A DNA stretch of 64,000 nucleotides, from assembly GCA_964035545.1 (NCBI GenBank), contig OZ037765.1, positions 992,001-1,056,000 on the forward strand. The letters run 5' to 3'. This stretch comes from Bugula neritina (taxonomy: Eukaryota > Animalia > Bryozoa). Positions 11,501 through 63,385 of this stretch are shown piece after piece (position 1 is the first letter of the stretch; every line of letters begins with the position of its first letter). The notes below the pieces were generated by a model. That model saw nothing but the letters and a program-made list of their open reading frames with translations, was not told the origin of the DNA and did no database searches. The position numbers were made by a program, and so were the translations under genes.

Positions 11501-14500
11501 CAGTGCAATTTATAATATAGATATGAAATGTTTTGGCTGTGCATTATGCATGATGTATAAACCTAATAATTGTATACACTAAGGCTAAGTGCTAATCAAC
11601 ACTTATTTAAAACATTTTTATGTCACAGATAAAGTAACAACTCTTTATGTATGATTATAAACTCCATTTTTTCATATCTTTCCATATAAAACCTCATTAT
11701 TTTAATAGTTTTTGGCAACAACCAATAATCAATAATCAATACATGTATTGGCTTTGTAGATCTTCACTCCAAGTGATCCTGAATACACTTGGCTGGCTGC
11801 CAAAATGTGGTTCAACCTCGCTGACTGTTCGCTTCACCAGTCCGTCTCCCACCTTGGTAGGACAACTTCTAACCAATTACCTAAAGTACATACTTGCTAA
11901 GCTTTCTATCACTATCAGATGTGTTGTACTATTATATAAAGGAATTCTATTTTAATGAAGCGTCTGCATAGGCTAATTATTTTCATACACTTGACAGGTA
12001 TGACTCATTTGCTGATGGAATCTGTTGCCGTAGTAACCAATAGACAACTCTCTCGGTCCCACCCACTTTACAGACTACTTGCCCCACATTTTCTATTCAT
12101 TATGAATATCAACACGTAAGGCTAATTTAACATGCTGTCTATTGACTCTCGGGTTTACTTGTAATAACCAAGGTCAAATCATTGGCATCACAAGTTCAAG
12201 TTTTCAAAAATTTCTGAATAATATGTGACTTTAGAAGTAAAATAAATTCTATTATGTAATACCCAAGTAAACTGTAGGAGCTGCAGTATATAGCCAATCA
12301 TGTCATTCCAAACTGTTGATATGATTGGTGCAAGAAGCAGCTACAAGTATATTAGAAAAGGGAAAGCAGATTCTGTTCTTCATAGGTATAAGAGCTGAGA
12401 GCTTTTTAGTGCCAACATGCCATAGGCATTGATAAAAATTTATATTTTTAAGTATGTTTAAACTAATTGTGACATGCAACCTCTAAATTTTCATTGACTC
12501 GTAGACTGGCTATGGAAGCGCTGGTGTCGGTGGGAGGCTGGGTGGATACGGCCATGAATATAGGACGCACTGGTATGTTCAACATAATCAAGGCGAATTG
12601 GAAGGACTGGAAGCTGGAGACTCACGGTAACTTGCCGGCAAATCTGAGGATCAGAGGAGTAGAGGAAATCCCCAACTACTTCTACAAAGATGATGCACTT
12701 CTGCTGTGGAATGCCATCAACAAATATGTGGCAGAAGTGGTTAATCAAGTCTATGGTGAGCTCCGTTTAGCTTTGGTTCTCCATTATAAAAACTTGTTAA
12801 AGGCTTTTCAGCTATCCTTCCCAACTGAAAGTCTTGTTTACAACATGATAGGTTCTAAGTCAATATATATGACTATTTACAAGAGCTCTAGGGTTACTTC
12901 ACCGTAATGTCTTTTTTTGTTTTTCACTCTTCTAGTTTGTAGCCTACTGATAACAGATTACCAATTACTAGTTGTGAGTTATACTTGTTACTAGTTACTA
13001 GTTACTAGCTATTAGTTCCCAGTTACTAGTTACCAGTTACTAGTTAGCAGTTACTAGTTACCAGTTACTAGTTCCCAGTTACTAGTTTACAGTTACTAGA
13101 TACCAGTTACTAGTTACCAGTTTATTTCACAGCTAAATTCAAAATTATTTGCCTGCAGCAAAGTATATGCCTAACTTTATTAGATGTCTAAAATTTCAAA
13201 AGTTCCCTTAGTATAGAATAGGTGATCACTGCTACTGACCATAGTTTCCTTAATTCTTTACACAAAAGTAAGTCTGTGACCAAAGTTTTCATATTTTAGA
13301 CACAAAGGAGAAATTTACTGGAGATTTTGAAGTCCAGAACTGGTTAGAGGAGTTGGAAGGAGAAGCAGAAATAGTAAGAAACTTTATAATATCCTTGCGT
13401 TGAATTAGTTTTCTCTATCAGATCTGCTGCTCATCACTTACTTGATGGTCACAGTTCGTTTAAGGTCATACTTTTCATTTTCTGGCTCTTTGCCAGGTGC
13501 TTTATGTTCTATATGAACAATGTTCCACTGATAGCTCGAACAGGTTGAATGTCACAGGAACAAAAAAAATATGAAAAGATAAAGAAACTTATGTTCTCCA
13601 ATATACTTTTTTATTTTTTTCAAAAGCCAATTCATGTTTAAGTTATAGCTTGTTGAAAAACATAGTCCCCCTTCCACATTCTTTTTAATTTATACGCTCC
13701 TGACTTGTTATTGTGTCTCAATATGCCTTGTATTTGAGTGCTTGTTAGTCTCGCTTCACTAACTTTGCCTATACTTCACAAGTGCCAGTGCTGCTGGCTC
13801 AAAAGCTAAATGTTATAAACTGTCAGCTAAAACCCAATCTTGTATTCCTAGGTTGGTTGGCCTAAATAAAACAATAGTCAAATCATGATTTTATGTTTTA
13901 AAAATTTACTCTATTCTAACCTGCTGCCTAGCTAGTTCTATTTTTGATGTATAATTACAAAATTTGTGATACATTTTTTTGGCAACCATGTGATTTATAA
14001 AATGCAGTAATGGTACTTATAATATTATATTATTATCATTATAATATATTATATAGTATTATGTGTGTTTTTATTATACTGCATAATATCTATTTTATTA
14101 TTGTTGTTGTGCAAACAAGTGCAATTAACCTAGTTTTCAAAATGTACCTCTAAATTATCAGAATATCAGTTTAGATATTTTCATGCTTTGTAAGGTAAAC
14201 CTAAAAAAAGAGGCTGTATTCCCAAAGTAAAGGGTGTTGAACTATGAACTATATTAGATTAGCCACTCTGCTACCAAGTGCATCAGTATAATATTATATG
14301 AATAGCTCTGATGCTTTGTCTCCGGTGGCTGGCTGCGATATGATAACTTGGCCAACTTCCAAGAGTTTAAAATTGGCGCAATTATTCAAGAGGTTACATA
14401 CTGCACAGAGCTAGCAGTGATAGTAACCTTGCTATCGGCTGTACTTATTACAACTGCCAGCATATAAGCTGCATTGTAGAATGCCGTTGGGGTAGGCTAG

Positions 14501-17485: not shown

Positions 17486-19130
17486 ATGTTTAAAGAAGCA
17501 TTATATACAATATATATATAACAGATATAATAAAAGTTATATATATATATATATTATATATAGATATCTAAAATATGCTTCAATTGCTAAGAAAAAGCTC
17601 TTCTATCAATCATAAAAATATTCTGACAAACTCATAGTGAATGTTTCATTGTAACAATCATTTTATAAAAAGAAATTAATTTGCTAGACTTTAATAAAAG
17701 GTGTTGGTAGTTTATTGATATAATATATATTATAAAGCACATAATTTATTCTAAAGTCAATACTGAGATTAATTTTTATGTGATAAAACTGCAATTATTA
17801 CTCAAAGTTTACTAAATTATTGCAATTCAGTTTTAACATTATATGATTAGTTTTATAGTGCTATTTTTTACATTATTTGATTTTGGTGTTTGTATTTTAT
17901 TATGCTGTTTTACTGCATAGAAAAGTTTTTCAAAAAAATGTTCAAATATTGTTGCATTTATGCCAAATAAACATTTGAAATAATATGAATATTTTTATAC
18001 AAGAGTGTCTGCACTATGTACTTTTATCTTTTCTAATTTCATCACAAGTTGTTTTCAAACAATCATAGCTTTAAGGTCGTTTCTTCAAATTCTTCATCAG
18101 TTTGAACCAAATATCAACAGTTTATTATCTACAGTTCATTATCAACATTTCATTATCAACAGTTCATTATCAACAGCTAATTATCAACAGTTTTTGTTAT
18201 CAACAGTTTATTATTAACAGTTGATTATCAATAGTTCATTATAAACACATTATGATTAGTAACCATTATTTAGCATTAGATTTGCCTTATTGCAATAAAT
18301 ATACTATTAATACAATAAAACACTATAAATTTCATTCAAATTTTCAAAAAGGTGATGTTCAAGTAGCATAATATAAAAGTTAATAATAAAATTGAAGAGC
18401 TGAAGTTATTTTAGTCTCACTACTATTTATATATCATTCTTCTACTCTGATACTGCATATTATATGGCATTACCACACACGTCTAAGAACGCTGTCTGAT
18501 TTCAGGAAATGCGTAATTTATAACTGCTTTAGACTGGCTTAGATGTCCCATAATGCAGACTTTACCAGCTGCCAAGGTAATGGAATTAATCATAGATGAA
18601 GTGCTGGCTGGTAGAAATTAATAAGCAATCAGCACAATGAGGTGTACATATATCTAGCGTAGTTAGAGCTATAATGTAGTAGGTGCATTATAGAGCTCAA
18701 TAAGTTTATTTATCAGCCTTACAGCCTTTATCAGCCTTTTTCCCTTTTCCTCATTGTTTTTGTACAGTGCTATGCTATAGCGCTATTGTACAGTGCTATT
18801 GTGTAATCCTATTGATGCGGGTATTATATTACAAAAAAGCTAATAAGGTTAGTAAAGGTAAAGTGAATTACTAAAGACGCAGTTTTTTTGCTGGGATTAC
18901 ATACAGATGTACAGACAGACATAGGCACAGACAGAAGAATTCGTAGTAATTCTGCCTAGACCAGGTGATTTAGTTTAATCAAGACAAATGACTCAGAGTT
19001 ATAATGAAATGAAAGCCGATTCAAAGTAACTTATTTGGAACATCTAACATCTAACTCCATAGCAAAGTAAAGGCTTCGTTGTTTTGAAATTAATCAATCT
19101 AAACAGTCAATCGTGTTTTTTACAACAAGA

Positions 19131-19362
19131 ACTGTAGTATAGTAACTGTAGTATAGTAACTGTAGTATAGTAACTGTAGTAACTGTAGTATAGTAACTGT
19201 AGTATAGTAACTGTAGTATAGTAACTGTAGTAACTGTAGTATAGTAACTGTAGTATAGTAACTGTAGTAACTGAAGTATAGTAACTGTAGTATAGTAACT
19301 GTAGTATAGTAACTGAAGTATAGTAACTGTATAGTATAGTAACTGTAGTATACTAACTGTAG
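19131..19362. repeat. 14-bp minisatellite (AGTATAGTAACTGT)n about 100 bp upstream of the ankyrin-caspase ATG
   Basis: Directly visible array with interspersed 9-bp deletion variants. Confidence 0.9.
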
Positions 19363-19467
19363 TGCAGTGTCTGAAGTAGGTATATTATGGCTGAATCATC
19401 AAATCAGCCATATTACTACAACCACTGCTTAATTCTTTCAAATTTTTTAATTTAATGAAGGAAAAGG

Positions 19468-22400
19468 ATGGATGAAAATAATAAAAGTGAGTCTGGAGAT
19501 GAGTCAGAGAATGACTCAGTCTCTGACGGACCTGACTCTCTAAGTTCAGACGACTCCTCCGAGTCCAGTGGTGAAGATTTCTCTCCAGATTTGTCTGATG
19601 GTGAGTTGGAGTGGAATCAAGATGACAACACAACTCCAGCTGTAAGTTTCTTAGTATTCAATGCAAAGCAACTGTTTACAAAGTTAATAACTGTATTCTA
19701 TGTGGAGCTTGAGATACTTCCAATAATAATGAATATGAAATAAACTCCTGTAGTCCAAAATATTTTGGAATAAAAGATACTAAAATTAGAAAACCAAGAT
19801 TTTGTGTGTTGGTACCCTAGCTACTCCTAATGATCTTAATCATACATTGCTAAATAATTCAATGACCAAACTCGTTTGTTTAATTGCAACAACATTTTAA
19901 ATTGCCTGCGTAACAGCAAAATATGTTTATGTGAAAAAGTAATTTTATTTTATCTATCCTCAGAATCAGTTGAAAATAGCAGCCATGAATGGTGACATAG
20001 AACAAATGAACTCGATTCTGAAGAAAGACACAGGTCAGAACCTACTGCTGAATACAGACAGTCAGGGGCGCACAATTCTCCACAACTGTAGCACAGTGGA
20101 GTCGGCGAAATACATCCTGTCAGTTTGTCCCGCAGAGAAAAAGAAACGCTTACTTGAGACCAAAAGTTATTCTGGGGAAACAGTCTTACATTGCGCCGTG
20201 CAGACCGGATGTCCAGACTTGACTAGACTTTTCCTGAATGAAGTAAACCCAAATTCTAAGAAGTTGCTATTTGAAAAAGACGGGCATGATAGTACAGCCC
20301 TCCACTTTGCAAGGAATGTCGAAGTAGCCCAAGTGTTGCTAAATGCACTCACTTTTGAGGATCAGATTGAATTTATATTTTTGACAGATGAGTTTGGTTT
20401 GACTGCACTTCATCAGGCGTCTACACATAGATGCCTGGATGTAATATCGCTTTTCCTTAACACAGTCAAGAGTGAAAGTCAAAAGCTGTTGCTTCAGTCG
20501 GACGTGTATGGCCGTACCTCCTTAGCCTATGCTGGAAACTCAGCAACCGTTGAACTGCTAGTAGGACATTTTAATGGTGATCCAACTGAGTACATTTATC
20601 ATGCAGACCTGGAAGGTAGAACTCCGCTGAGAGTGACGATAGATGAAGGTTATCGATTAGATGTTATTAGATACTTTATTGAAATGTTTGACTCCGAGAA
20701 ACAAAAATTGATTCGAATGGCAGCAAAAGATGGTAGCACAACTCTCCACGGAGTAGAAAATGTAGAAACAGCTCAAATCTTGGTAGAAGCTGTGGCTCTG
20801 GTGGATAGGATTCCTTTTATCTTCCAGGAGAACACAGAAGGCCAGACAGCTTTCCATTCAGCAGCAGAGTTTGACAAAGAAGAAGTCCTAATTTATTTGG
20901 CTGATCAAGTAAAAACTGATTGCATAAAGTTGCTGACTGCCAGAGACAAACAAGGTCGAAATGCGTTGCACCTCGCCAATGAAAAGGCAACAGCAAGAAG
21001 ACTCTTGAAGTTGTTCACAGCTGCGTTGGAGTTGAGCCCAGATTCCAGTGGAGGTTTGATCAACGGATGCTCATATATAATGCAACTAGATAACTGTGGA
21101 GACTCAGCAGTGAGCATCGCTTTAGTGAAAAACGATGTCCAATATGATACGTTTAAATACTTGCTAAAACATGCTCGCGAACATGGCACAAAACAAAATT
21201 TAAAGTTTCTCTTAGAGCACAGAAATATTTCTGGAAGAAATGTTTTTCATTTAGCTTGTCTTTCCTTTTCCATTGAGAAGTTATTCCGAGTTTTAGAAAG
21301 CTATAAGAATTTTGTGGATGTTCAAGCTGTAGTTTTACCTGACAAATATGGAAACAGCCCTGTAAGTTACATAGCTGCTAAATACTACACACACTGGTTT
21401 GCCGACATTCTAATGCAGCTGCCATTACCACTAAGACGAATTCTGTGCGCAAGTAAAAACACAAGAGGTGTCAATGTGAAGGAGATCGTTCATCGTCAGC
21501 AGTTTGACAGGAAGTACTTTCTGGAGTCGATACTCGGAGAGCCATACATGTTTGTCAAAGGTGCTGAGGGCAGTTCTCAAGCTCAAAGGACAGACAGTTA
21601 CTACCGAACATCTTTCCAAAACTTTGTGTACAAACCAAAGAGACGTGAAGATGACGTCATACTGAAAGTCATCAATTATGCTTTGAACTACTATTCCATC
21701 ATAGATCCTGGTTCAGTCACATCTCTTGCTCTCTGTGTTGATTCATTGGATCAATCTTCACACCACCAGTTCAAGAGAGGCACTATTTCAAAGGCAAGAA
21801 TTTATAATTAAAAATTGGCAATCAACCAAAGAGTGCTAACTTTAACAAAATAGCAGAACGCAGTTTTGCTGTTGATAAGATTTTATAGAAGTCCATATGC
21901 CTGAGCGTTTCACTGTTTTTATTTGTTTATTATTTTAAAACAGGTGAGTAAGAAAATAGACTTAGCAATGAAAGAAGACGGGTCGGCTTTGTGGCTGTTC
22001 CTTCAAAGTGGCTGTGATGATGATAAACTGAGGCTAACTCAGCAAGCAATCAACTCTATGGACAAACCATCTTACCATGGTAAACCTAAAGTAAGTTACC
22101 TACCGGGTTATAGCTGCCTTCTATAATGTTTCTTGGGCGTGAAACTGTTTATCATCTCTATAGATAGATTGTTATATGTGGTTATATGCTCTAATTTGCT
22201 TTCGAATTGAAAATACTATATATGCATCAGAATAATTGTAGGAAATTTTTAAAACCTGCCTTATATGAAAGTTAGTGTGCAAGAAAAAGTAACTCGAAAA
22301 TTAACTGGTAAAATGCACGCCCTATTTTAAGTTTAGCATATTTTATATTTATTAAAATAAAGTTTTTCAGCACAAAAGTTGCTGCAGCAACTTTTTAACA

Positions 22401-25400
22401 TTCAACAATTATAGGCTTTTAAAGCCTCTTTCGCCACCTATATCATAAGAAACAACTTGCTTTTTTTATTCTAAACCAGAATTAATATTATAGCTTTAAT
22501 ATAATCAAAATTTTAAATAAATTGTAGACATGCTTGTACATTTGCTCAGTTATTTGCAGTGACAGTTCTCATCTTACACATGTTACTAGGTAGCTGTTGT
22601 ACAAGTAGTAGCACCACCACCAGATGATATGCAAGGTTCTCATCACCAGACTAGTCTTATTCCACCTGGTCCTGATTACCTCATCATTTCAGCTTTTCTG
22701 AGAGCAAATCACGAGAGAGATGAGTAAGTAGTTAACTTTCTCACCTAGAGGGTTGTACTCCTGTATGTGTAGCCGTATAGTAAGCTGTAATTTCAGTGAA
22801 GTTTTAAATTTGTTTGCTAGCAGTATTTGGTTATAGACAATGTCATTAATAAACTTAGTCTGCTAAAACAAGTCTGTTCTACAGCTTTTTCAATCCATTA
22901 AAAGTCTTAAGGTTTACAAAATCCACTTATAATAATTATATCATGTACACAAGTAGGAAATCTCGTGATATTAGAGAGGGTAAGTGTCATATGGCTGAGT
23001 TATGAAATGGTTAAGAATAGTCCTTAATATGGTACTTTTATTTCTGACAATGTATAAAAATGTATGCATATGGGGTAAAAGTCACTTCTTTAGTTAGAAT
23101 CAGCTTTTTAATGACATGAAACAGTAAAGGGTATCAAAATAAGTCTAAGCAAAATACGAATTGATAGATTATCTATTAAGGTATTTTTTTTATTCTAGAT
23201 ACTCACTTATAAATGCAATAATTGCTAAGGAAATACAGAAACAATTGTTATACATTATGAGTATATACCTTATGTTGAAACTTGACTTTCTGAATGAAGA
23301 CATCACTGAGGCATAACATATGCAGCTAATGCTATTCCACACAGGTCCTGTGAGAGATGGACCTTCAGTTCTCAAGACACATTCAGATGTGATATAGACG
23401 CAGTGTTGAAGAGACTAGAAAGAGACAGCAATGTGAAGGATGTCCTAATCAACTCAACTCTTGGGAGACAATATCAGTCAAGTTCTCCGTTGACTGAATC
23501 AGAACAGGATATCTCTGAACACCCTCGAGTGGATTTTGGTGAAGCGTATGGAGGTAAAGCTCTGCTCATCTGCAATACATTGGGTCGTCGCAACTGGGAG
23601 AAAGAGCTGCTTGATGCCCAGACAGTCACTGAAAAGTACTTTGGACTTCAGGTGAGAAAATTAGCCCTATTTCCAATAATATTTCTCTTAAATACCAGCT
23701 ATGGAACAGTGGTTAGAGGTTACAATTCTATATTTAAAATGCAACAGATTTGCTGGTGCCAATAACTCTTTTGTTCTATTAATAATTCTATAACTGCCAA
23801 GATAGTTTGAGTAAAAGTCTGTAGAATGTTGTTAAAAATCCAACTAGTTAGATTTTATAAAGGACTTTATACTGAAAATATGAGTATTTCTAGTACAACC
23901 TCATTACATTCTCTGATGGGTAAGGTTTTTTAGTTTTAACCAGGATACATAGGATATAGTGAGGGTACATGGTATAGTGAGGGTACATAGTATAATGAGG
24001 GTATATAGTATAGTGAAAGTGCATAGCTGTCATACTAACGATCTTGGACATCTTGCAGACGACAACCAAGAAGGACTTGTCCAGCGCAGACATGATACAG
24101 GCCGTAGCAGAGTTTAGCCGACTTCCTTCTCACGGCCCTGTAACCTGTCTCATTATCATGTCTCACGGTGATCAGAGAGGAGATATTGTTGACAATGCTG
24201 GCTCCACCTGTACTGTGCAGAGTTTGCTCCATGCTTTAGTCTCCCCTGAACTGTCCCCAACGTACAAAGTAAGTGAAAATCAGTTTTAGTCTGGGAAATA
24301 TTTTCTGCACCGCATCTGCTTGTCCTAATGTGAGTTTATACACTGCGGCATTTAAGTCAATGGTACATAGATATATAATAAAGTCTCATTTTGATTTCCA
24401 AATGCTGATTTCTTTTAGCTGCATTTAATATTGTTTGCATTGTGGGCATAGTTAGTACTACTTATTTCACTTGTTATTAGATTTAGTAATATTTATAGAT
24501 GCTTGTTGAGAATTCTTTTCCATGTACTTTACAGATTGCGGTGTTCTCTTTCTGCCGGGGTAGTATACGGCGCAGCTACACAAGAGTAGAGTGTAGCTGG
24601 GAGTACACAGAACTGCCTAACATCCTACGCTCCAAGGACGTGCCGCTAGTACAAAAGACTTTGACAGAACAAGAACTTTTGAAAGAATGGGAAGACAACC
24701 CTTTACCCGGCATCCATATTCCTAAAGATGTGTTTGTATGCTTTACTACTCTCCCAGATAGCAAGTGAGTTAAATAGTTTATTATATTTTTTATTTAAAA
24801 TTAGCATTTTTGAAAATTGAAATATCGAAATAAAAATTCCTTGTAAAAATTTACAGGAGCAAACGAGGCTTGTTCCTGGATGCATTGAGAAGTAATTTAT
24901 CGAATATGTGTAAATACAATATGGCTGACAAGTTCAAGGACTTTCCTACACAAACTACAAATTCAATTCCCACAGAATGCAGCATCGTCAAAGAGTCTTT
25001 CACTAAAGTTACTTTAGAATTATCTACATCTGTTGAAAGTCATTGTAATAAAACTAGTGAGCTCACAAACAATAATAACATAGTTGACTACACAGAAACT
25101 AATGAGATCATCAACAACGCCATTACTGATGACATCACACCTAATCAAGCCAACATTACGGTTGACATTTCTATGACTGACAAAGTCCAACAAAACCCGC
25201 TGTTGAGTGACGCTACCACTGCAATGAGGAGCGAGAATTATAGACCTCCGAGAAGCAAAAAGAGAGAGTTTTCCAGCGTAAGCCCTGCCCACACACAAGA
25301 AAAGATGGCGTGGAAAAAAAGAAAAAGAAGCCAAGTGGATTTGGTGCATTTGATAACGGATGTAGCAGCCGAAGTACGTGAGAACTCAGGGTATGCAGTC

Positions 25401-25451
25401 TACATCAACTACTGCTACAGACCAGATAAACATGTCATGTTATCTTTCTAG
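19468..25451 (+). CDS. Ankyrin-repeat / pseudo-caspase / caspase (peptidase C14A-like) fusion protein, 1208 aa, 8 coding exons
   Basis: Exons 19468-19641, 19964-21793, 21944-22090, 22590-22723, 23345-23651, 24059-24268, 24535-24764, 24857-25451 (3627 nt, phases consistent; intron 2 donor AAG|GCAAGA). About 13 ankyrin repeats (GRTILH, GETVLH, STALH, GLTALH, GQTAFH, GRNALH, GRNVFH). Caspase motifs GKALLICN..RR, CLIIMSHG (His 24164-24166), IAVFSFCRG (Cys 24553-24555), IPKDVFVCFTTLP, GLFLDAL, DLVHLITDV. Confidence 0.85.
21944..23474 (+). other. Degenerate, catalytically dead caspase-like domain within the ankyrin-caspase gene
   Basis: ALWLFLQSGC (position of ILSHG, no His), YHGKPK|VAVVQVVAP (position of LxGKPKLFFIQACRG, no Cys), IPPGPDYLIISAF (IPxxADFLxAYS) and INSTLGRQY (STLxKxLY) occur in caspase order. 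Intron phases 0/0/2 match those of the downstream active domain. Confidence 0.7.
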
Positions 25452-26697: not shown

Positions 26698-29600
26698 TCA
26701 CGGATTTTCATCTGATGATGTCAGCTGCTTTTCGTGGTCATACTTTGAGGAGCCTTGAAAGAAAATGAAAATGAAATTTAGAAAATTACTTGCAGCTCAA
26801 AACTCAGACAAGAACATAAAAGGTCCAGAACGAAAAGTTCAGCATAGAGTGAGTAGATAGAAGTATAGAGTGAGTAGATAGAAGTATAGAGTGAGTAGAT
26901 AGAAGTATAGAGTGAGTAGATAGAAGTATAGAGAGAGTATATAGAAGTATAGAGAGAGTAGATAGAAGTATAGAGTGAGTAGATAGAAGTATAGAGTGAG
27001 TAGATAGAAGTATAGAGTGAGTAGATAGAAGTATAGAGTGAGTAGATAGAAGTATAGAGAGAGTATATAGAAGTATAGAGAGAGTAGATAGAAGTATAGA
27101 GTGAGTAGATAGAAGTATAGAGTGAGTAGATAGAAGTATAGAGTGAGTAGATAGAAGTATAGAGTGAGTAGATAGAAGTATAGAGAGAGTATATAGAAGT
27201 ATAGAGAGAGTAGATAGAAGTATAGAGTGAGTAGATAGAAGTATAGAGTGAGTAGATAGAAGTATAGAGAGAGTATATAGAAGTATAGAGAGAGTAGATA
27301 GAAGTATAGAGTGAGTAGATAGAAGTATAGAGTGAGTAGATAGAAGTATAGAGTGAGTAGATAGAAGTATAGAGAGAGTAGATAGAAGTATAGAGAGAGT
27401 AGATAGAAGTATAGAGAGAGAGAGAGTAGATAGAAGTATAGAGAGAGTAGATAGAAGTATAGAGTGAGTAGATAGAAGTATAGAGTGAGTAGATAGAAGT
27501 ATAGAGAGAGTATATAGAAGTATAGAGAGAGTAGATAGAAGTATAGAGTGAGTAGATAGAAGTATAGAGTGAGTAGATAGAAGTATAGAGTGAGTAGATA
27601 GAAGTATAGAGAGAGTAGATAGAAGTATAGAGAGAATAGATAGAAGTATAGAGAGAGTATATAGAAGTATAGAGATAGTAGATAGAAGTATAGAGAGAGT
27701 AGATAGAAGTATAGAGAGAGTATATAGAAGTATAATGTGAGTATATAGAAGTATAATGTGAGTATATAGAAGTATAGAGATAGTAGATAGAAGTATAGAG
27801 TGAGTAGATAGAAGTATAGAGTGAGTAGGTAGAAGTATAGAGAGAGTAGATAGAAGTATAGAGTGAGTAGATAGAAGTATAGAGTGAGTAGATAGAAGTA
27901 TAGAGTGAGTAGATAGAAGTATAGAGTGAGTAGATAGAAGTATAGAGTGAGTAGATAGAAGTATAGAGTGAGTAGATAGAAGTATAGAGAGAGTAGATAG
28001 AAGTATAGAGAGAATAGATAGAAGTATAGAGAGAGTATATAGAAGTATAGAGATAGTAGATAGAAGTATAGAGAGAGTAGATAGAAGTATAGAGAGAGTA
28101 TATAGAAGTATAATGTGAGTATATAGAAGTATAATGTGAGTATATAGAAGTATAGAGATAGTAGATAGAAGTATAGAGTGAGTAGATAGAAGTATAGAGT
28201 GAGTAGGTAGAAGTATAGAGTGAGTAGGTAGAAGTATAGAGTGAGTAGATAGAAGTATAGAGTGAGTAGATAGAAGTATAGAGTGAGTAGATAGAAGTAT
28301 AGAGTGAGTAGATAGAAGTATAGAGTGAGTAGGTAGAAGTATAGAGTGAGTAGGTAGAAGTATAGAGTGAGTAGATAGAAGTATAGAGTGAGTAGATAGA
28401 AGTATAGAGTGAGTAGATAGAAGTATAGAGAGAGTAGATAGAAGTATAGAGTGAGTAGATAGAAGTATAGAGTGAGTAGATAGAAGTATAGAGTGAGTAG
28501 ATATACTGAGAGAATATTTACCTGGTAAGAGCGGAGAGAGAAGAGAACTGGCAGTAGAGTTGCTATTCTGTCTAGAGAGTTGTCTCCCCACCACTCCTCC
28601 GTTACCAGCAGACTTAGTGTTTGATTTGATAGATTCCGGTATGAAAGTGGCAATAACAATGGCGGCTAAAACTAAGATGGCTCCCAGGGCGAAAGGAGGC
28701 CCGGGTACTAACTGTAAAGGAAATGGAACACACGTGAGCATAAACTGGTGACATCACAACTCTCCCCGAATAACTTGACAAACTCTCAATACTAAATTAA
28801 TTCTGTGAAGCTGTCTTAATGATGAGTCATACTAAAAATTTCATCTTATAATCATTTGAGTTCATACATAAAGCTGTTGCGGAGTAAGCCAACAAAGACG
28901 ACATTCCATAGAATGATTGAAATTATTCATTAAAACTGGTATGCAAACAACAATGACATCAGCACACATATTGATTACATTATCACGTATATGGATGACA
29001 TCACGACTTACGCGATCAGTGAGACTCGTGCTCTCAGCCTGCACAGTTCTCGTGTCAGGCATGATGTTAGACTTTATAGAGCCTTCCTTTTTGTCGTTGA
29101 GATCAACATTGAACAGATAGAAGACGAATCCAAACAGCGCGGGTCCCAGTCCCATACATAATCCTCTAATGCCCGTCACCACCCCCTGCGCTACACCTGC
29201 AACAAAATTGACGTCTACAGTTACTCTCACGAGGCGATGATAGCTACAAACTACTTGATTAGCTAGGATTTGAATGATGAGACTGAATTTAAGTTGTCTT
29301 ACCCTGCTGGTCAGGATTAGCCTGTGAGGAGACAAAGGCGCTGATAGCTGGATAGGTTATACTAGAAACTGAGGCTACAAATCCAGCCACCCACATGACC
29401 CTGTAAACATCCAATATACTACAATCAGTACCACAATACAATCAGTACCACAGACACTACAATCAGTACCACAGACAGTACAATCAGTACCGCAGATAAA
29501 CAAACAAGGAGTTACCTCCCCATACACTAGGGTAGTATAAATAGTTTACCAATTGGTGGACCCGAAGCCATATAGCGTCAGCTGTATAGTCTCTGCTGAT

Positions 29601-32600
29601 AGACCTATTATTATGGCAGTTTTAGCACCAAGATACGACATCAAAATGGCCAGCAAAACAGTCTACAACAAAATGGATTATTATTACAAAGAAAATCAAT
29701 ATAAAAGAAAGTCAATAAAACAGTCTACAATAATATTATCCTAATGAAGTAAACTGATAGATGAAAGGAAAAAGCATTAGACTAATTACAAAAATGTTAT
29801 TAGAGGTAACACTGCATAAATATAAATTAACAATACACCATATAATATTAGCTTAGCCTCAGCTCACTAACCTGGGCCAACACGGATAGGATGCCTACAA
29901 AGGCTATGTATGACGCCACAGCCTGTTCACTGAAGTTCATCACCTGCAAGAGAGGATAACTCAGTGAAACAGTGTGTAGCAGTAGACAAGGAATAGCTGG
30001 CTACAGGTGAAGGTCACTGAAGAGATGAAGGTCACTGGAGAGGTGAGATCACACTTACCAGTTTGAGGTAGACAAAGAAACAAGAGTATTCCCCAGCTTC
30101 GGGCAGATAAGAGAGTAGAACAGTGAAACAGAGAAGTAAAATGAGCTTGTCGTGACCCAGTTTCTTCAACGCCTGCAATGAGCATTACCACTGTGACGGT
30201 ACACACAGCATTACCACTGTGACGGTACACACAGCATTGCCACTGTGACGGTACACACAGCATTGCCACTGTGACGGTACACACAGCATTACCACTGTGA
30301 CGGTACACACAGTATTACCACTGTGACGGTACACACAGCATTACAGTGAAAGTGATAACACAGCTAACTAAAGTGAAAGTGATGAATCAGCGAATCAGAT
30401 AGCTGTTATCAGGAAGCAAGAATTTCATCATAACAATCAACACAAGTTTGTCCTCAGTGTATAAATAGAGAAACATTATTCAATATTGAGACTTGAGTTG
30501 AAATAAATCAATCAATTGTCAGTATTTATCTACTCTCAGATCTGTTATGAAGGACATTGTACTGTCAACTGGCATTACTTTGGATCAACTGGTTTATACT
30601 GAATATGGTACAGCTGAACTATCATATACACTACAGCAGAATATAGGTACACTCAGCCCAGTGGAATATCAACAGTATCTGAAAGGAAAGAAGCGCGAAA
30701 CCCCCCCCCCCCCCTTACATTCAGAGACGGTAAAGGACACTTAGGCTAACAAGTAAAGGACACTTAGACAAAGTCTTACCCCGAACGGGTCTGCTTTCTC
30801 CCAGGAGATGTGGGAGCCCCAGGAGGTTGTGGGTCTCATCTTGTCTGGGAGAGACTCGGGCATGAATACGAGAATAAAGAGGATGTCTAAGGCAGCGACA
30901 GCGCTGGCTATTATAATGACTACATTCTGACTATATACATTCTCTATGAAAGCACCAATAGCTGGGCTGGTGATGAGACTGGCAGCAAATGTTGCTGACA
31001 CCTGAAAATAGAGTATGACACCTTGCTGACACCTTGTATATAGTATATACTGACACCTTGCATATATTGTATACTGACAGCTAGTATATTGTATATACTG
31101 ACACCTTGTATATTGTATATACTGACAGCTAGTATATTGTATATACTGACACCTAGTATATTGTATATACTGACAGCTAGTATATTGTATATACTGACAG
31201 CTAGTATATTGTATATACTGACAGCTAGTATATTGTATATACTGACAGCTAGTATATTGTATATACTGACAGCTAGTATATTGTATATACTGACACCTTG
31301 TACATATTGTATATACAGTATATAAAGAGACACTTACCAGACCATAAGCCGAGCTCCTCTCTTCTTCAGACGTTATGTCTGCCACGTACGCAAAAACTAC
31401 GCTAAACGTTACAGCAAACGCTCCTGAGAGAGAGATTAAAGCAAAGTACCACCTGGAAAGTGTATATATGATAATAATATAGTATAATATAAAATACATT
31501 ATAACACAACATATAATACAACACAGTAAATATGGAGAGGTGACTTGATATTAAGATCTAACAACTCCAGTTAGTATCCAGTCAACACCCTGATGTAAGT
31601 ATATGCTGTGTAATATGTAATCATATGTAGAGTTCATGACCTTTAGATGATGTCATTGAGTTTTCGTATGATGTCCTACACACTCTCATCTACTGACTAG
31701 TTACTAGGTAATAGTTACTAGATAATAGCCACTAGGTAGTAGTTACTCAATAATAGTTACTAGATAGTAGTCACTAGGTTAGAGTTAATAGTTGATAGTG
31801 ACAAACTCACCACGGACTAATCATCATGAAAGGTATAGGCGCGCAGGTACAAGCCACTGTGAGTATAAGGAAAGGTTTTCTACCTATCGTGTCGGACATG
31901 GCGCCAACCAGGGGGGCACTGAGGAAGGAGAGAATACCCTGTAATAAATACCATGAGGATAGAATGGAGGGTATAGAGTGGAGAGTATAGACTACAGAGT
32001 AGGGAGTATAAACTAGAGAGTATAGAGTGTAGAATAGAGAGTAGGGAGTATAGACTAGAGAGTATAGAGTATAGAATAGAGAGAATAGAATGTAAACTAG
32101 ATAGTGTATATATTGCAGACTAAACTCTAAAGAGATATAACTCTGAAATAAAGAGCACACTTGTAATATAAGAGAATACAATATATAACCACATGCCTGT
32201 GGATCATAATATGACAGTCACACACCACATCACGTACAAAGATATGCTTCCCTCCCTTATCAGACACACAGACAGACACACACACAGACAGACACACATC
32301 TATTCTAGTAAGTCACGGAATATTTCACCATATATATTAACTTGACTACATTTCCTGTTACACAACACTAACACTAACACTCTACAGTTTAGTTTCACAT
32401 ATAGAGTAGAAATAAGCTAACAGTAGGCTACAAATCCTGGTATATTTTACCAATTCTTTTGACTGGGAGATTACTGAAGTGAGAATATAAGACTAAGGAG
32501 GGCTTACAGCTGTTCTGTGACATAATAATAAATGATATGAAAAGAATTAGACTATTAAATAGAATAGTTGAAGAGATGGAGACAGTAGAGCTGTAGTACA

Positions 32601-58017: not shown

Positions 58018-59238
58018 GCAAGCAATACAAATACATTGTGCCCATTACAGGCTGGCTGCGGTAGACAGTAAGAGAACTATTATAGTGCCACGTCTGAACA
58101 CACTTCCTGTTGATGAATCTGTGAAAAAGCAGCTTCTCCAACAGATACGCTCAAAGTCTCCAAATCATGTCGATAGAATGAAATCAATTAATGTGAGTCG
58201 TGCTTTGGTAACTTCTGTAACAGCTTTTGTTAGGTTAATAGAATATTTAGCTTATTCATTAATGTTTCATTTTCTATCATATCTAAAATAGTTTTATTTT
58301 TATTTTTCAAGAAAGCCGAAAAGTCTTTGGCCCGTCGCAAAGACATCATGATGTCAAAGGATGTGTTGAAGTTTGAAAAGTCACTAGAGTTGGCCTCTAA
58401 AAACCTCAAAGAGGCGGAACAGCTACCTCGGTCTGACTTTGAAACAATAAATGATTTGGATAAGCTTGCAGAAAGAGCGAGGCAGTATCAGGAAAATAAT
58501 CAGCTGTTAAGTGGAGTCACTACACAACATGTTAGTGGTGACACGTCTGCAAGCTCTGACTCACACATGTCTGTAAACTCTGACTCAAAACTAACCAATG
58601 GTGTTAGCAGACGTAACAGACCACCTAGAGGTGAACACAGTCTGCCATTCATACAAAACAGAGACTCAATTCATTGGGACATTGACTCAGAATCTAATGG
58701 GACTTTATCCGACGAATCCGTTGAGGAATTCATTGATGTAACTGAGACGACCGCCAACTCGGCATTTACAATTGTAAATAGCAACAGAGGTCAAAGTTCA
58801 AACTGTTCTCCTAGCAGTCGTGTTGTATCATCATCTCCTGGTAAAGACAGCCCGACATCTAGTGTCAAAGGTCATGCGTCACCCAATTCTAATAGCCGCC
58901 ATAGCGACCTTCAACAGCAATGTCAAAAGTTACAAGACATGCAAAGAAACCATAGACTGACTCCCACCATGCACAGTACGAGAGCTCCAACTAACACCCC
59001 TATCATTTCTCCTAATTCTCTAAATAATAGTTTTATTACTCCGGCTAGCTCTAAGGTTCCACACTCTAACGGCATGAATGGTAAACCAGCTATAGCTCCT
59101 AAACCTCAGCTAAGGTCAAACAGGCTCAAGGTTACTGTTTCCACTGCAGATGATTTAACTAGTTGTCACTCACACAGCTCATCTGACTCTCACAGTGAAA
59201 GCCTTTCTCTTAAAGAACCTAAATCAACAACTGTCTAA
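45079..59238 (+). CDS. AIP3-domain coiled-coil protein, SRCIN1(p140Cap)/KIAA1217(SKT)/CG32809 family, ~1014 aa
   Basis: Exons 45079-45244, 48259-48335, 50226-50327, 51011-51197, 51983-52181, 52679-52827, 53270-53428, 54535-54736, 55070-55209, 56082-56266, 56996-57114, 57255-57461, 57646-57729, 58051-58192, 58312-59238 (3045 nt). Family motifs RSSLPIIR, GLVFLTYQNVTKKTVLPSEIKNLDTIKAMFLRCFPQQLT, RMAKMESQLASLTAWVQTAL, ELEAYVSELRSDV, FISKEP. Ends STTV (class I PDZ ligand). The exon 10 donor is uncertain. Confidence 0.88.
46015..46183. repeat. 38-bp minisatellite built from two related halves, x ~4.5
   Basis: ACTACCCTGTCGTCTGCAACTATACTCTCTAGTCTGCA repeated. Confidence 0.88.
46532..46732. repeat. 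(CA)n microsatellite interrupted by CT
   Basis: Visible; gives the spurious HTHT ORF. Confidence 0.95.
49740..50080. repeat. 15-bp minisatellite (TACTACAGTAACATG) x ~23
   Basis: Visible; gives the spurious MYYSN and VVHVT ORFs. Confidence 0.95.
51184..51628 (+). repeat. 38-bp minisatellite x ~11.7 that includes the exon 4 end and 5' splice site
   Basis: Unit CACCAGACACGTGGGTGAGTCATACAGTCTACTTACAC; the first copy overlaps the real exon end at 51197. Confidence 0.95.
52179..52641 (+). repeat. 16-bp minisatellite (ACAGTAAGTATAATAT) x ~28 starting at the exon 5 donor
   Basis: Almost every unit carries A|GTAAGT; the first is the real donor at 52182. Confidence 0.93.
54091..54222. repeat. 22-bp tandem repeat x 6 containing RFX X-box-like motifs
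   Basis: GTTGCCTAGCAAC and variants at 54091, 54113, 54135, 54157, 54179, 54198. Confidence 0.8.
54918..55050. repeat. 21-bp pyrimidine-rich minisatellite (CACTGAGCTCTTCACTCTACC-like) x ~6
   Basis: Visible array just upstream of the acceptor at 55069. Confidence 0.85.
56285..56977. repeat. 31-bp minisatellite (CTGATATTCTATATATAGTAACTAACTCACT) x ~22
   Basis: Fills nearly the whole intron 10 of the SRCIN1-like gene. Confidence 0.93.
57754..58017. repeat. (CTA)n microsatellite
   Basis: Visible; gives the spurious poly-V/poly-S ORF. Confidence 0.95.
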
Positions 59239-61108: not shown

Positions 61109-63385
61109 TTAGTGGTTACATTTTCCCAAACAGAGATCAAAGAGCCCGAACTGTTCACAGTTTGTTTCACTATCTTGTGGGCGACTGGGTATACTGGGAA
61201 TCATGATACTCATACACCCTTCTGGCTGGACTAATGAAGTGCATGGTGGTTCAATTGTCCTGCGTTTGACCCTTGTCAATTTTTCACAAGTCACTCTCTC
61301 GTCTTCTTTGTAATTTTTGCTAGCATCATGAAATATCTCCTCAAGAGGTTGGCTAGAACCAGCATGCTGAATACTCCAAGCCAGGTTGACTAAAAAACCA
61401 TTTTTTTCTTCTTTATAGCGTCCTTTGCCTTCTTCACAGGACATCATGAGCTTTACGTCTTTATACTTTTTTATCATATCATTAAGATCTGCTCTTGGAA
61501 GATGTTCATAGCATTTTTGACAAGCTTCTATAGCTATTATCTACAAGCAAAACATGTACACCTGATCATTGTATGGAAATAATATGTGTATTCTACACAT
61601 TGTACACAAAAGAAAATAAATAAGAGAAGTCTGTAATCTGATAACTGACTGTAATTTCTGAAAACATGACTTTTCAATTTCTAGAATTTTTAGGTGAGCA
61701 AGATAGTTATGCTAGTTATCATACGTAGAATAAAGAAATTCTAAGTACTTGAGTAAACAATGGCCAGTTTGTGATTACACGCTGTTGTACATCTACAGCA
61801 CTTTCATTTTGAATATGAGCTCTAAATTCATGATTGGGAACTCAAGCTAAATAAAAAGTTGTAGATATTACCAGCTGAGTCAACTTATTATGCAATAATT
61901 TTTTTTTCTGTGTTGTTTGCTTATATGTTCAGCTATTTTGTTACCACAAAAAAAGTTTACTTTAGACTATCATAAACCCAGCACTTTATGTGCTTAGAAC
62001 AATTGGGGTATAACAAAGCCTAAGCAGGTGCACATGATATTAACTGTTCTACTTATTATACACTCCATGTTCAACTATACTATCACTATCAACTGTTAAC
62101 TGCTATTATAGTCACAACTGAAGCTATAACCCACTGCTATATGACTACAACTACAACAGTAGAATCACAACTATTGCTACTAACTATTACTAATATATCT
62201 TCAGCACTGATACTGTTGGCATGGCACTGTTATACTAGCAACTATTATTTTACATACTATTACTATATAAATGTTACAAACCTTGGGTATACCTTGTAGA
62301 TGCTGATAGTCTTTAAGAATTATAAGTAGCTCTTCTATTTTCATATAATTGTTGTTATGTAAATCTACATAGTTTCCATGAAGTAAATATCCATATACTC
62401 CATGACAAAAAATAGACACGATCAAGAGAGAGCAGTGTTCTATGTTATCTAGTTCATCTCTAAATGTTTGTTTGAACTGTGGAAATACAGCGGAAGAATG
62501 TAAACGTGAAATCTTGAGTTGTATTGATTTCACCTCAACTCCCACTGCTTCTAATGCTGTGGTCATTTCATTGGCAGCTCGTTTCTCTTGTTTGGGAAAA
62601 CTGAGACCATTACCAGAAGAGCTCCCTGTGACACCTTCTAAGAATCCCGAAATAACAATACCATACATTTTAGCAAATCTTATTCCCTCACTAGGACGAG
62701 GGATTATATAAAAAAAATTGGAACATGGTTCAACAATCCTCATCATTTTTTGTGTCATGGGTGTTTTGCAGAACTCTTTCACGTTATCTTCTTTATCAAG
62801 ATAGCCTAGCAAGGAAGGGCTCACACCAAGCGCAGGACGCAAAAGTGGCTCCATAATGTCAACACAATCATTTTTGGCAATAATGTTAAAACGAGGCTCA
62901 TCTGCATTAGCTCTAGGATCAAAGAACTCATGGAACAACTCTACGGCGTTGCTTTCTATAAATCGCTTGACTGAATTGTGTTTGCATTGTCGTAGGTTCC
63001 AAAGAAACCACAACTCAGCACTCAACACAATCAACTTCCATACCTCCTGGTCATTCTTATTTATAGGTTTTAATCCATCAGATGCATTACCGCTCTCTTC
63101 CATCAGTTTATTTAGTTCCCATTCGACTGAACTATAAATTTCTGGTAATGACCATCTTTCTCTTTCATCTTCCGATTGCCTTTCAGCATTTTTATACAAT
63201 TCAAAAAGATAGTCCGGAATAGAAACGATATCCTTAGCAACTATTGGAAGGTTTTTCAGAAAGTCAACATCTGTTTTTTCTATCATAGTGTTTAGTTTTG
63301 CCATAGAAGATGTTTTACTTCGCCGCAGAAATGTTTTGAATTTCTTAAACAATTTCTTCACTTCTCCTTCTGTTAGTTCAGCCAT
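61109..63385 (-). CDS. Divergent caspase-like protease (C14 fold) with an uncharacterised ~230-aa helical N-terminal region, 511 aa
   Basis: Coding exons (minus) 63385-62282 and 61540-61109 (GT-AG, phase 0), with a 5' UTR acceptor at 63435-63436. Motifs MYGIVISG, TTALEAVGVEV (LF..LGF.V equivalent), CSLLIVSIFCHG (His 62402-62404), HLQGIPK|IIAIEACQK (Cys 61520-61522), KDVKLMMSC, GFLVNL, PLEEIF. Confidence 0.85.

Follow-up and report, generated by a model that had tools for sequence, protein, structure and literature searches.

An ankyrin-repeat caspase gene family of bryozoans with a putative catalytically dead caspase remnant as candidate in-cis partner

We analyzed a 64,000-nucleotide stretch of the Bugula neritina genome (NCBI GenBank assembly GCA_964035545.1, contig OZ037765.1, positions 992,001 to 1,056,000; hereafter the window, with positions counted from its first letter). 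Between 19468 and 25451 on the forward strand (+), the strand of all gene features given below, lies a gene for a single chain of 1208 residues, in which ankyrin repeats are followed by a putative caspase remnant lacking both catalytic residues and then by a complete caspase domain. The gene is real, expressed and conserved, and belongs to an apparently undescribed bryozoan family. Animal caspases are taught to be obligate dimers assembled by death-fold adaptors. In this protein, the remnant may instead supply the dimer partner from within the same chain.

The coding sequence (CDS) is built from eight exons, which upon joining by script translate into 1208 codons and a stop, without internal stop. 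All seven exon joints, including a GC-AG one, were seen in Logan contigs from four runs of three studies. A single 2225-nt contig joins exons 1, 2 and 3, and the remaining joints are bridged by overlapping contigs; no single Logan contig among the four runs spans the full CDS. The runs are labelled as RNA by guess only; we take them to be transcript-derived because their contigs show spliced joints. These contigs are 90-99% identical to the window and therefore stem from another lineage. The single spliced gene of eight exons and 1208 residues proposed in an earlier, sequence-only reading is thus borne out by the RNA joints and the intact frame. That the ankyrin and caspase exons belong to separate genes was ruled out: RNA joints link them in a chain, and they occur together in 20 of 20 family genes. 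Exon 1 (19468-19641) encodes residues 1-58, an acidic N-terminus that is rich in Ser, Asp and Glu (34 of the 58 residues), as had been read from the sequence. An upstream non-coding exon (3' end at 18935-18964, followed by a GT donor) is resembled by the loose ends of two RNA contigs before position 19461, and splicing it on puts a TAG in frame, five codons upstream of the ATG. The intron in the 5' untranslated region contains a short tandem repeat with a unit of ~15 nt (window 19130-19360). Exon 2 (19964-21793) ends at the GC donor of intron 2 (GC-AG; 21794-21943), the 150 nt of which are skipped in all four runs.

The remnant (residues ~680-806, about 130 residues) amounts to roughly half a caspase fold. 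It keeps α3, β4, the L2'/β5 motif, one helix and β6, while β1, α1, β2 and the catalytic loops are gone. Exon 3 (21944-22090; residues 669-717) encodes a β3-like strand without the catalytic His, followed by α3 and the sequence GKPK. Exon 4 (22590-22723; residues 718-762) encodes β4, with Val724 at the position of the catalytic Cys, a short linker (~10-12 residues in most paralogues), the L2' equivalent PPGPD, and β5. PPGPD is the most conserved motif of the remnant, with its P, P and D invariant in the L2' position. The start of exon 5 (23345-23477; residues 762-806) contributes a helix, which by its topology may be α5-like, and β6 (INSTL). Exon 5 as a whole (23345-23651) also encodes the variable linker to the caspase domain (23478-23549; residues 807-830; 16% identity over 20 paralogues) and the start of that domain. 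In one paralogue, at locus L036 (L036:5174-5278), counting from GKPK places a Cys at the catalytic position of the remnant, with no His.

Several lines of evidence relate this region to caspases. Folding and database searches were performed with database proteins and single exons, not with the joined 1208-residue chain. For paralogue P0015, residues 240-362 of the ESM Atlas model matched caspase-7-like and caspase-8 structures with a template modelling (TM) score of 0.69 over 119-120 of 123 residues, and a feature search returned caspases for two paralogues. The AlphaFold2 (AF2) secondary structure of the remnant is helix-strand-strand-helix-strand. At the sequence level, the remnant profile matched the family's own caspase profile in register (E 0.002), exceeding all 150 shuffles, and the α3-β4 and L2'-β5 segments each ranked their counterpart first among ~270-280 windows, in the proper order. 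Fifteen of 18 weak sequence matches in the PDB fell on caspase-1 at α3-β4 (E 0.5-1.8, not significant). In addition, the exon phases of the remnant mirror those of the caspase domain: exon 3 resembles exon 6 (24059-24268; phase 0-0, ending in PK), exon 4 resembles exon 7 (24535-24764; phase 0-2), and exons 5 and 8 (the latter at 24857-25451) both begin in phase 2. We conclude that the remnant is very probably derived from a caspase. The earlier description of a caspase-fold remnant holds with regard to the loss of both catalytic residues and to its likeness to caspases in structure, profile and introns, but the region represents about half a fold rather than a whole domain. Nor does it begin at 21640, as had been assumed; the recognizable remnant starts at residue ~680 in exon 3, and residues 620-637 form a separate conserved helix.

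The order of strands in the caspase sheet is 2-1-3-4-5-6, with β6 at the dimer axis. The strands kept in the remnant are thus those nearest the dimer axis, and the lost ones lie at the far edge. The product of exon 2 clusters with KAF6030367.1 (Bugula neritina EB796_011352), an annotation with matching junctions up to residue 762 that drops 14 residues and the true C-terminus. In the underlying DNA of B. neritina assembly GCA_010799875.2, all eight exons and the GC donor recur, and the coding length is again exactly 1208 codons. Between the two orthologues (synonymous divergence, dS, 0.165), the ratio of nonsynonymous to synonymous substitution (dN/dS) was 0.22 overall, 0.14 for the remnant and 0.19 for the caspase core. 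Among 14 paralogues, it was 0.28 for the remnant and 0.24 for the caspase core. A remnant that drifts neutrally or as a pseudogene is ruled out by these values (0.14-0.28). The retention of dimer-side elements together with purifying selection fits a built-in partner.

The caspase domain (residues ~831-1208; 23550-25448) spans exons 5-8 and contains both p20 and p10 elements; exon 6 matches Pfam Peptidase_C14. The catalytic residues recognized earlier in the sequence, His900 (24164-24166) in SHG (residues 899-901) and Cys941 (24553-24555) in SFCRG (939-943), proved invariant in 26 gene models. SFCRG departs from the pentapeptide QACxG, with Ser at the Gln283 position in 23 of the 26 models. 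Domain searches matched PF00656 and ankyrin families only; a CARD or DED prodomain is absent, and an ankyrin prodomain takes its place. Arg843 and Arg1014, aligned by the spacing in caspase-3, presumably correspond to Arg179 and Arg341, with Gln283 replaced. As these two Arg positions of the S1 pocket thus seem to be kept, the enzyme probably cleaves after Asp. The fold, the His-Gly and Cys-Arg-Gly motifs, the p20-p10 order and presumably the Arg179/Arg341 positions are shared with canonical caspases (C14A; CED-3, caspase-2, -8 and -9). The domain differs from these in the Ser for Gln283, a long conserved inter-subunit linker without conserved Asp, a shortened L3 loop and a long insert before α5. 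This low-complexity insert, rich in Ser, Thr and Asn and not mentioned in the earlier reading, lies between α4 and α5 of the small subunit (residues ~1031-1165, ~135 residues; 24915-25319), evolves fast (dN/dS 0.67 in the orthologue pair) and varies widely in length among paralogues.

The ankyrin array occupies most of exon 2 (residues 59 to ~560; 19964-21470; Pfam Ank_2, E 8e-31). Twelve motifs were found at a spacing of 35-48 residues, and a first repeat was read by eye, in agreement with the ~13 repeats counted before. Array length varies several-fold among paralogues, the open frame of the ankyrin exon ranging from ~490 to 3025 codons across the family. The longest frame is that of locus L034 (G000:C6 ~3073000-3082000), where the 3025-codon ankyrin exon is fused to the equivalent of exon 3. 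The last three to four repeats form a family-specific tail. Between the ankyrins and the remnant lies a bridge helix (residues ~620-637; 21647-21700) with 56% mean identity over 20 paralogues and an invariant Asn; the surrounding region (residues 601-668) has a dN/dS of 0.03 in the orthologue pair.

The window gene is not unique but one of 20 family genes in the 216-Mb genome. Three profiles, built on the ankyrin tail and on the motifs of exons 4 and 7, all find the same 20 loci. The layout is one-to-one in 20 of 20 genes, and in 19 of 19 paralogues by spliced alignment. Use of the remnant as a free module with other effectors was rejected, as the exon-4 profile finds the 20 family loci only. 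In a quick tree, 15 genes form one well-supported expansion, and the window gene is among five long separate branches. Fourteen of the 15 expansion genes (L021-L033, L035 and L036) have Ala, Pro or Lys at the Arg341 equivalent, and an insertion of up to ~12 residues is present after β1, which suggests an altered substrate specificity. The first half of the ankyrin-tail profile gave weaker matches at C2:30531885, C2:31059597, C9:9343963, C3:4484471, C3:4499817 and C6:15851758. The first three of these lie 3-4 kb from PF00656 exons, with no exon-4 remnant motif found, and may represent a second ankyrin-caspase family without remnant. Across the whole genome, at least 179 exon matches to PF00656 were counted, with clusters on contigs C1, C6 and C7, indicating a very large expansion of caspases.

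Outside this genome, the exon-7 profile gave 29 matches, ~27 of them credible, among 1.84 billion representatives. The full layout was found in Watersipora subatra (RefSeq XP_067930803.1 covers the caspase part only) and in marine samples of unidentified origin. B. neritina and W. subatra are cheilostome bryozoans of different superfamilies. None of the exon-7 matches, most of which lacked identification, was assignable to another phylum, and flatworm sequences were absent among the identified ones. The public annotations (P0015, P0047, P0061-P0065 and P0031) are all partial or mis-spliced, one being named CASP9, which probably explains why the layout has been overlooked.

How might the remnant act? 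We propose that this gene family of cheilostome bryozoans originated by a duplication of caspase exons downstream of an ankyrin exon, and that the upstream copy then decayed to those parts that face the two-fold axis of the caspase dimer. The remnant would occupy, within its own chain, the dimer face (β6) of the active domain and supply the L2' segment normally given by the partner protomer, as c-FLIP-L does in trans. Such a single-chain pseudo-dimer would need no CARD or DED platform. We lean slightly towards this packing in cis with supply of L2'; as an overall explanation, a pseudo-dimer with an activating or scaffolding role stands at about even chances. By analogy, the ankyrin array might bind a ligand or localize the enzyme and thereby act as an allosteric switch of the protease, a proposal drawn from that analogy and the variable array length and held only tentatively. 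It is rather doubtful that all of this combines into a one-component sensor-protease, in which the dimer is completed on the same chain by the dead half-caspase, with an exchangeable array of 10 to >60 repeats that senses a ligand and thereby turns on the enzyme.

A number of observations weigh against the proposal of a caspase-derived partner under ankyrin control. The remnant alone was not recognized in Pfam and phmmer searches, sequence support for its caspase origin comprises only ~30 columns, and its helix could be α4 or α5. The Atlas model is of low confidence, with an overall predicted local distance difference test score (pLDDT) of 0.51, and was made with the real caspase domain present, so that it is not fully independent. 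Its top structural matches are zymogen or inhibited caspases, and it is uninformative on activity. The AF2 model that includes the remnant in full was of poor quality (pLDDT 43; predicted TM score 0.34), because the annotated protein skips the β1/α1 exon and the alignment had eight rows. A better AF2 model lacked the first half of the remnant and was weak in the β6 region of the active domain. No contact between the two domains could be read from the AF2 models. Finally, the ankyrins are under purifying selection in the orthologue pair (dN/dS 0.14-0.24), leaving a sensor engaged in an arms race without support; positive selection across the array was not seen in this one pair, averaged by region. 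We also considered the reverse-caspase arrangement, in which the small subunit of the remnant would complete the active large subunit. The model gave no sign of it, and a conserved small subunit is already present in the active domain itself. A circularly permuted caspase-2 aligned to the large subunit of the model only; in this model, the remnant therefore does not stand in for the small subunit of the enzyme.

The built-in partner has to be weighed against other roles for the remnant. By covering the dimer face, it could keep the caspase in an inactive monomeric state, as XIAP-BIR3 keeps caspase-9, until an ankyrin ligand or cleavage of the linker frees the enzyme for homodimerization. A blocker of the dimer face would show the same conservation pattern, the short β4-β5 linker may leave L2' in a zymogen-like position, and the linker between remnant and caspase is variable and acidic. 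However, this linker has no conserved Asp site, and a mere blocker would not need the invariant L2' motif. We regard blocking as fairly unlikely, noting that activation and blocking by the remnant are indistinguishable from sequence alone. Alternatively, the remnant might act in trans, pairing with the caspase of a second chain or with others of the repertoire to form dimers or chains of molecules. The size of that repertoire, with its 179 or more PF00656 exon matches, would allow this, and dead partners normally act so (PMC11545656). Against it stand the fusion of one remnant to one caspase in every one of the 20 genes, the lack of any free-standing remnant, and a linker of at least ~20 residues in all members, probably enough for contact in cis; pairing in trans is accordingly quite improbable.

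Little credence is given to the view that the remnant serves just as a spacer or folding cap in a conventional dimerizing caspase, whose ankyrins would be a prodomain of the usual kind, the role suggested for them in flatworm ankyrin caspases. Such ankyrin-prodomain caspases do exist (PMC11463336), and purifying selection alone does not show regulation, but the elements that were kept are those on the dimer side, with β1, α1, β2 and the catalytic loops lost. The remaining alternative, a middle region of other descent with a chance likeness in a small α/β domain, can draw on the missing Pfam match, the insignificant PDB matches and the TM scores of 0.5-0.59 that non-caspase α/β folds reach against the Atlas remnant model. 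It is very improbable, since structure, the feature search on two paralogues, the in-order profile matches and the intron positions all favor caspases.

Parts of this architecture are known from other systems. Ankyrin-prodomain caspases have been described in parasitic flatworms and the annelid Alitta virens; the 2024 survey of lophotrochozoan caspases included no bryozoan and did not mention a dead second or tandem domain (PMC11463336). These proteins likewise have ankyrins in place of CARD or DED. The bryozoan family differs in the inserted remnant, the SxCRG motif and its 20 paralogues. The flatworm ankyrin caspases are placed in a flatworm clade that is sister to DED caspases. In c-FLIP-L, a dead caspase fold pairs with procaspase-8 and stabilizes its active site (PMC11545656; PDB 3h11). 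The remnant is similar in lacking the catalytic His and Cys and in being the dead half beside a live caspase. However, c-FLIP-L carries two DEDs and an entire caspase fold on a chain of its own, as opposed to a half fold of ~130 residues on the same chain. In Csx29, which resembles separases, TPR repeats are joined to a pseudo-caspase and an active caspase-like domain, and the TPR region exerts allosteric control (PMC10028731); separase has the same domain order (PMC10003635). What is shared with Csx29/TPR-CHAT and separase is the layout only: a solenoid, a pseudo-protease and an active clan CD protease on one chain. The bryozoan protein is not a member of either family, as no C50, CHAT, TPR or HEAT domain was matched (only PF00656 and ankyrin) and caspases outrank CHAT in the fold search. 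If the proposal holds, it may work like Csx29 and separase without belonging to them. The literature searched yielded no remnant fused to a true caspase on the same chain, and the Atlas shape search yielded no cluster named or annotated with the tandem layout; both searches were incomplete. The sequence-only statement that no characterized protein with this architecture was known is thereby narrowed to the fusion in cis, since ankyrin caspases and the order of solenoid, pseudo-protease and active protease had been described.

Downstream of the gene, the window contains a major facilitator superfamily gene on the reverse strand (26804-31499, -), and the same neighbor follows the orthologue in GCA_010799875.2. 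A simple tandem repeat of ~1.9 kb in this region gives rise to two long spurious open reading frames (26804-28741). An exon of a lipoxygenase-like gene (12494-12907, +; PF00305, E 5e-5) is located ~7 kb upstream. Two open reading frames of 303 and 394 residues (58327-59238, +, and 62201-63385, -) had no Pfam match.

A natural partner of ~130 residues on the same chain would reveal what portions of a partner suffice for activation or inhibition of a caspase, and would offer a compact template for single-chain, ligand-gated proteases as well as an entry point into bryozoan cell death or immunity. If the proposal is true, bryozoans would have reinvented the separase/Craspase design from true caspases as a one-component sensor-protease family.

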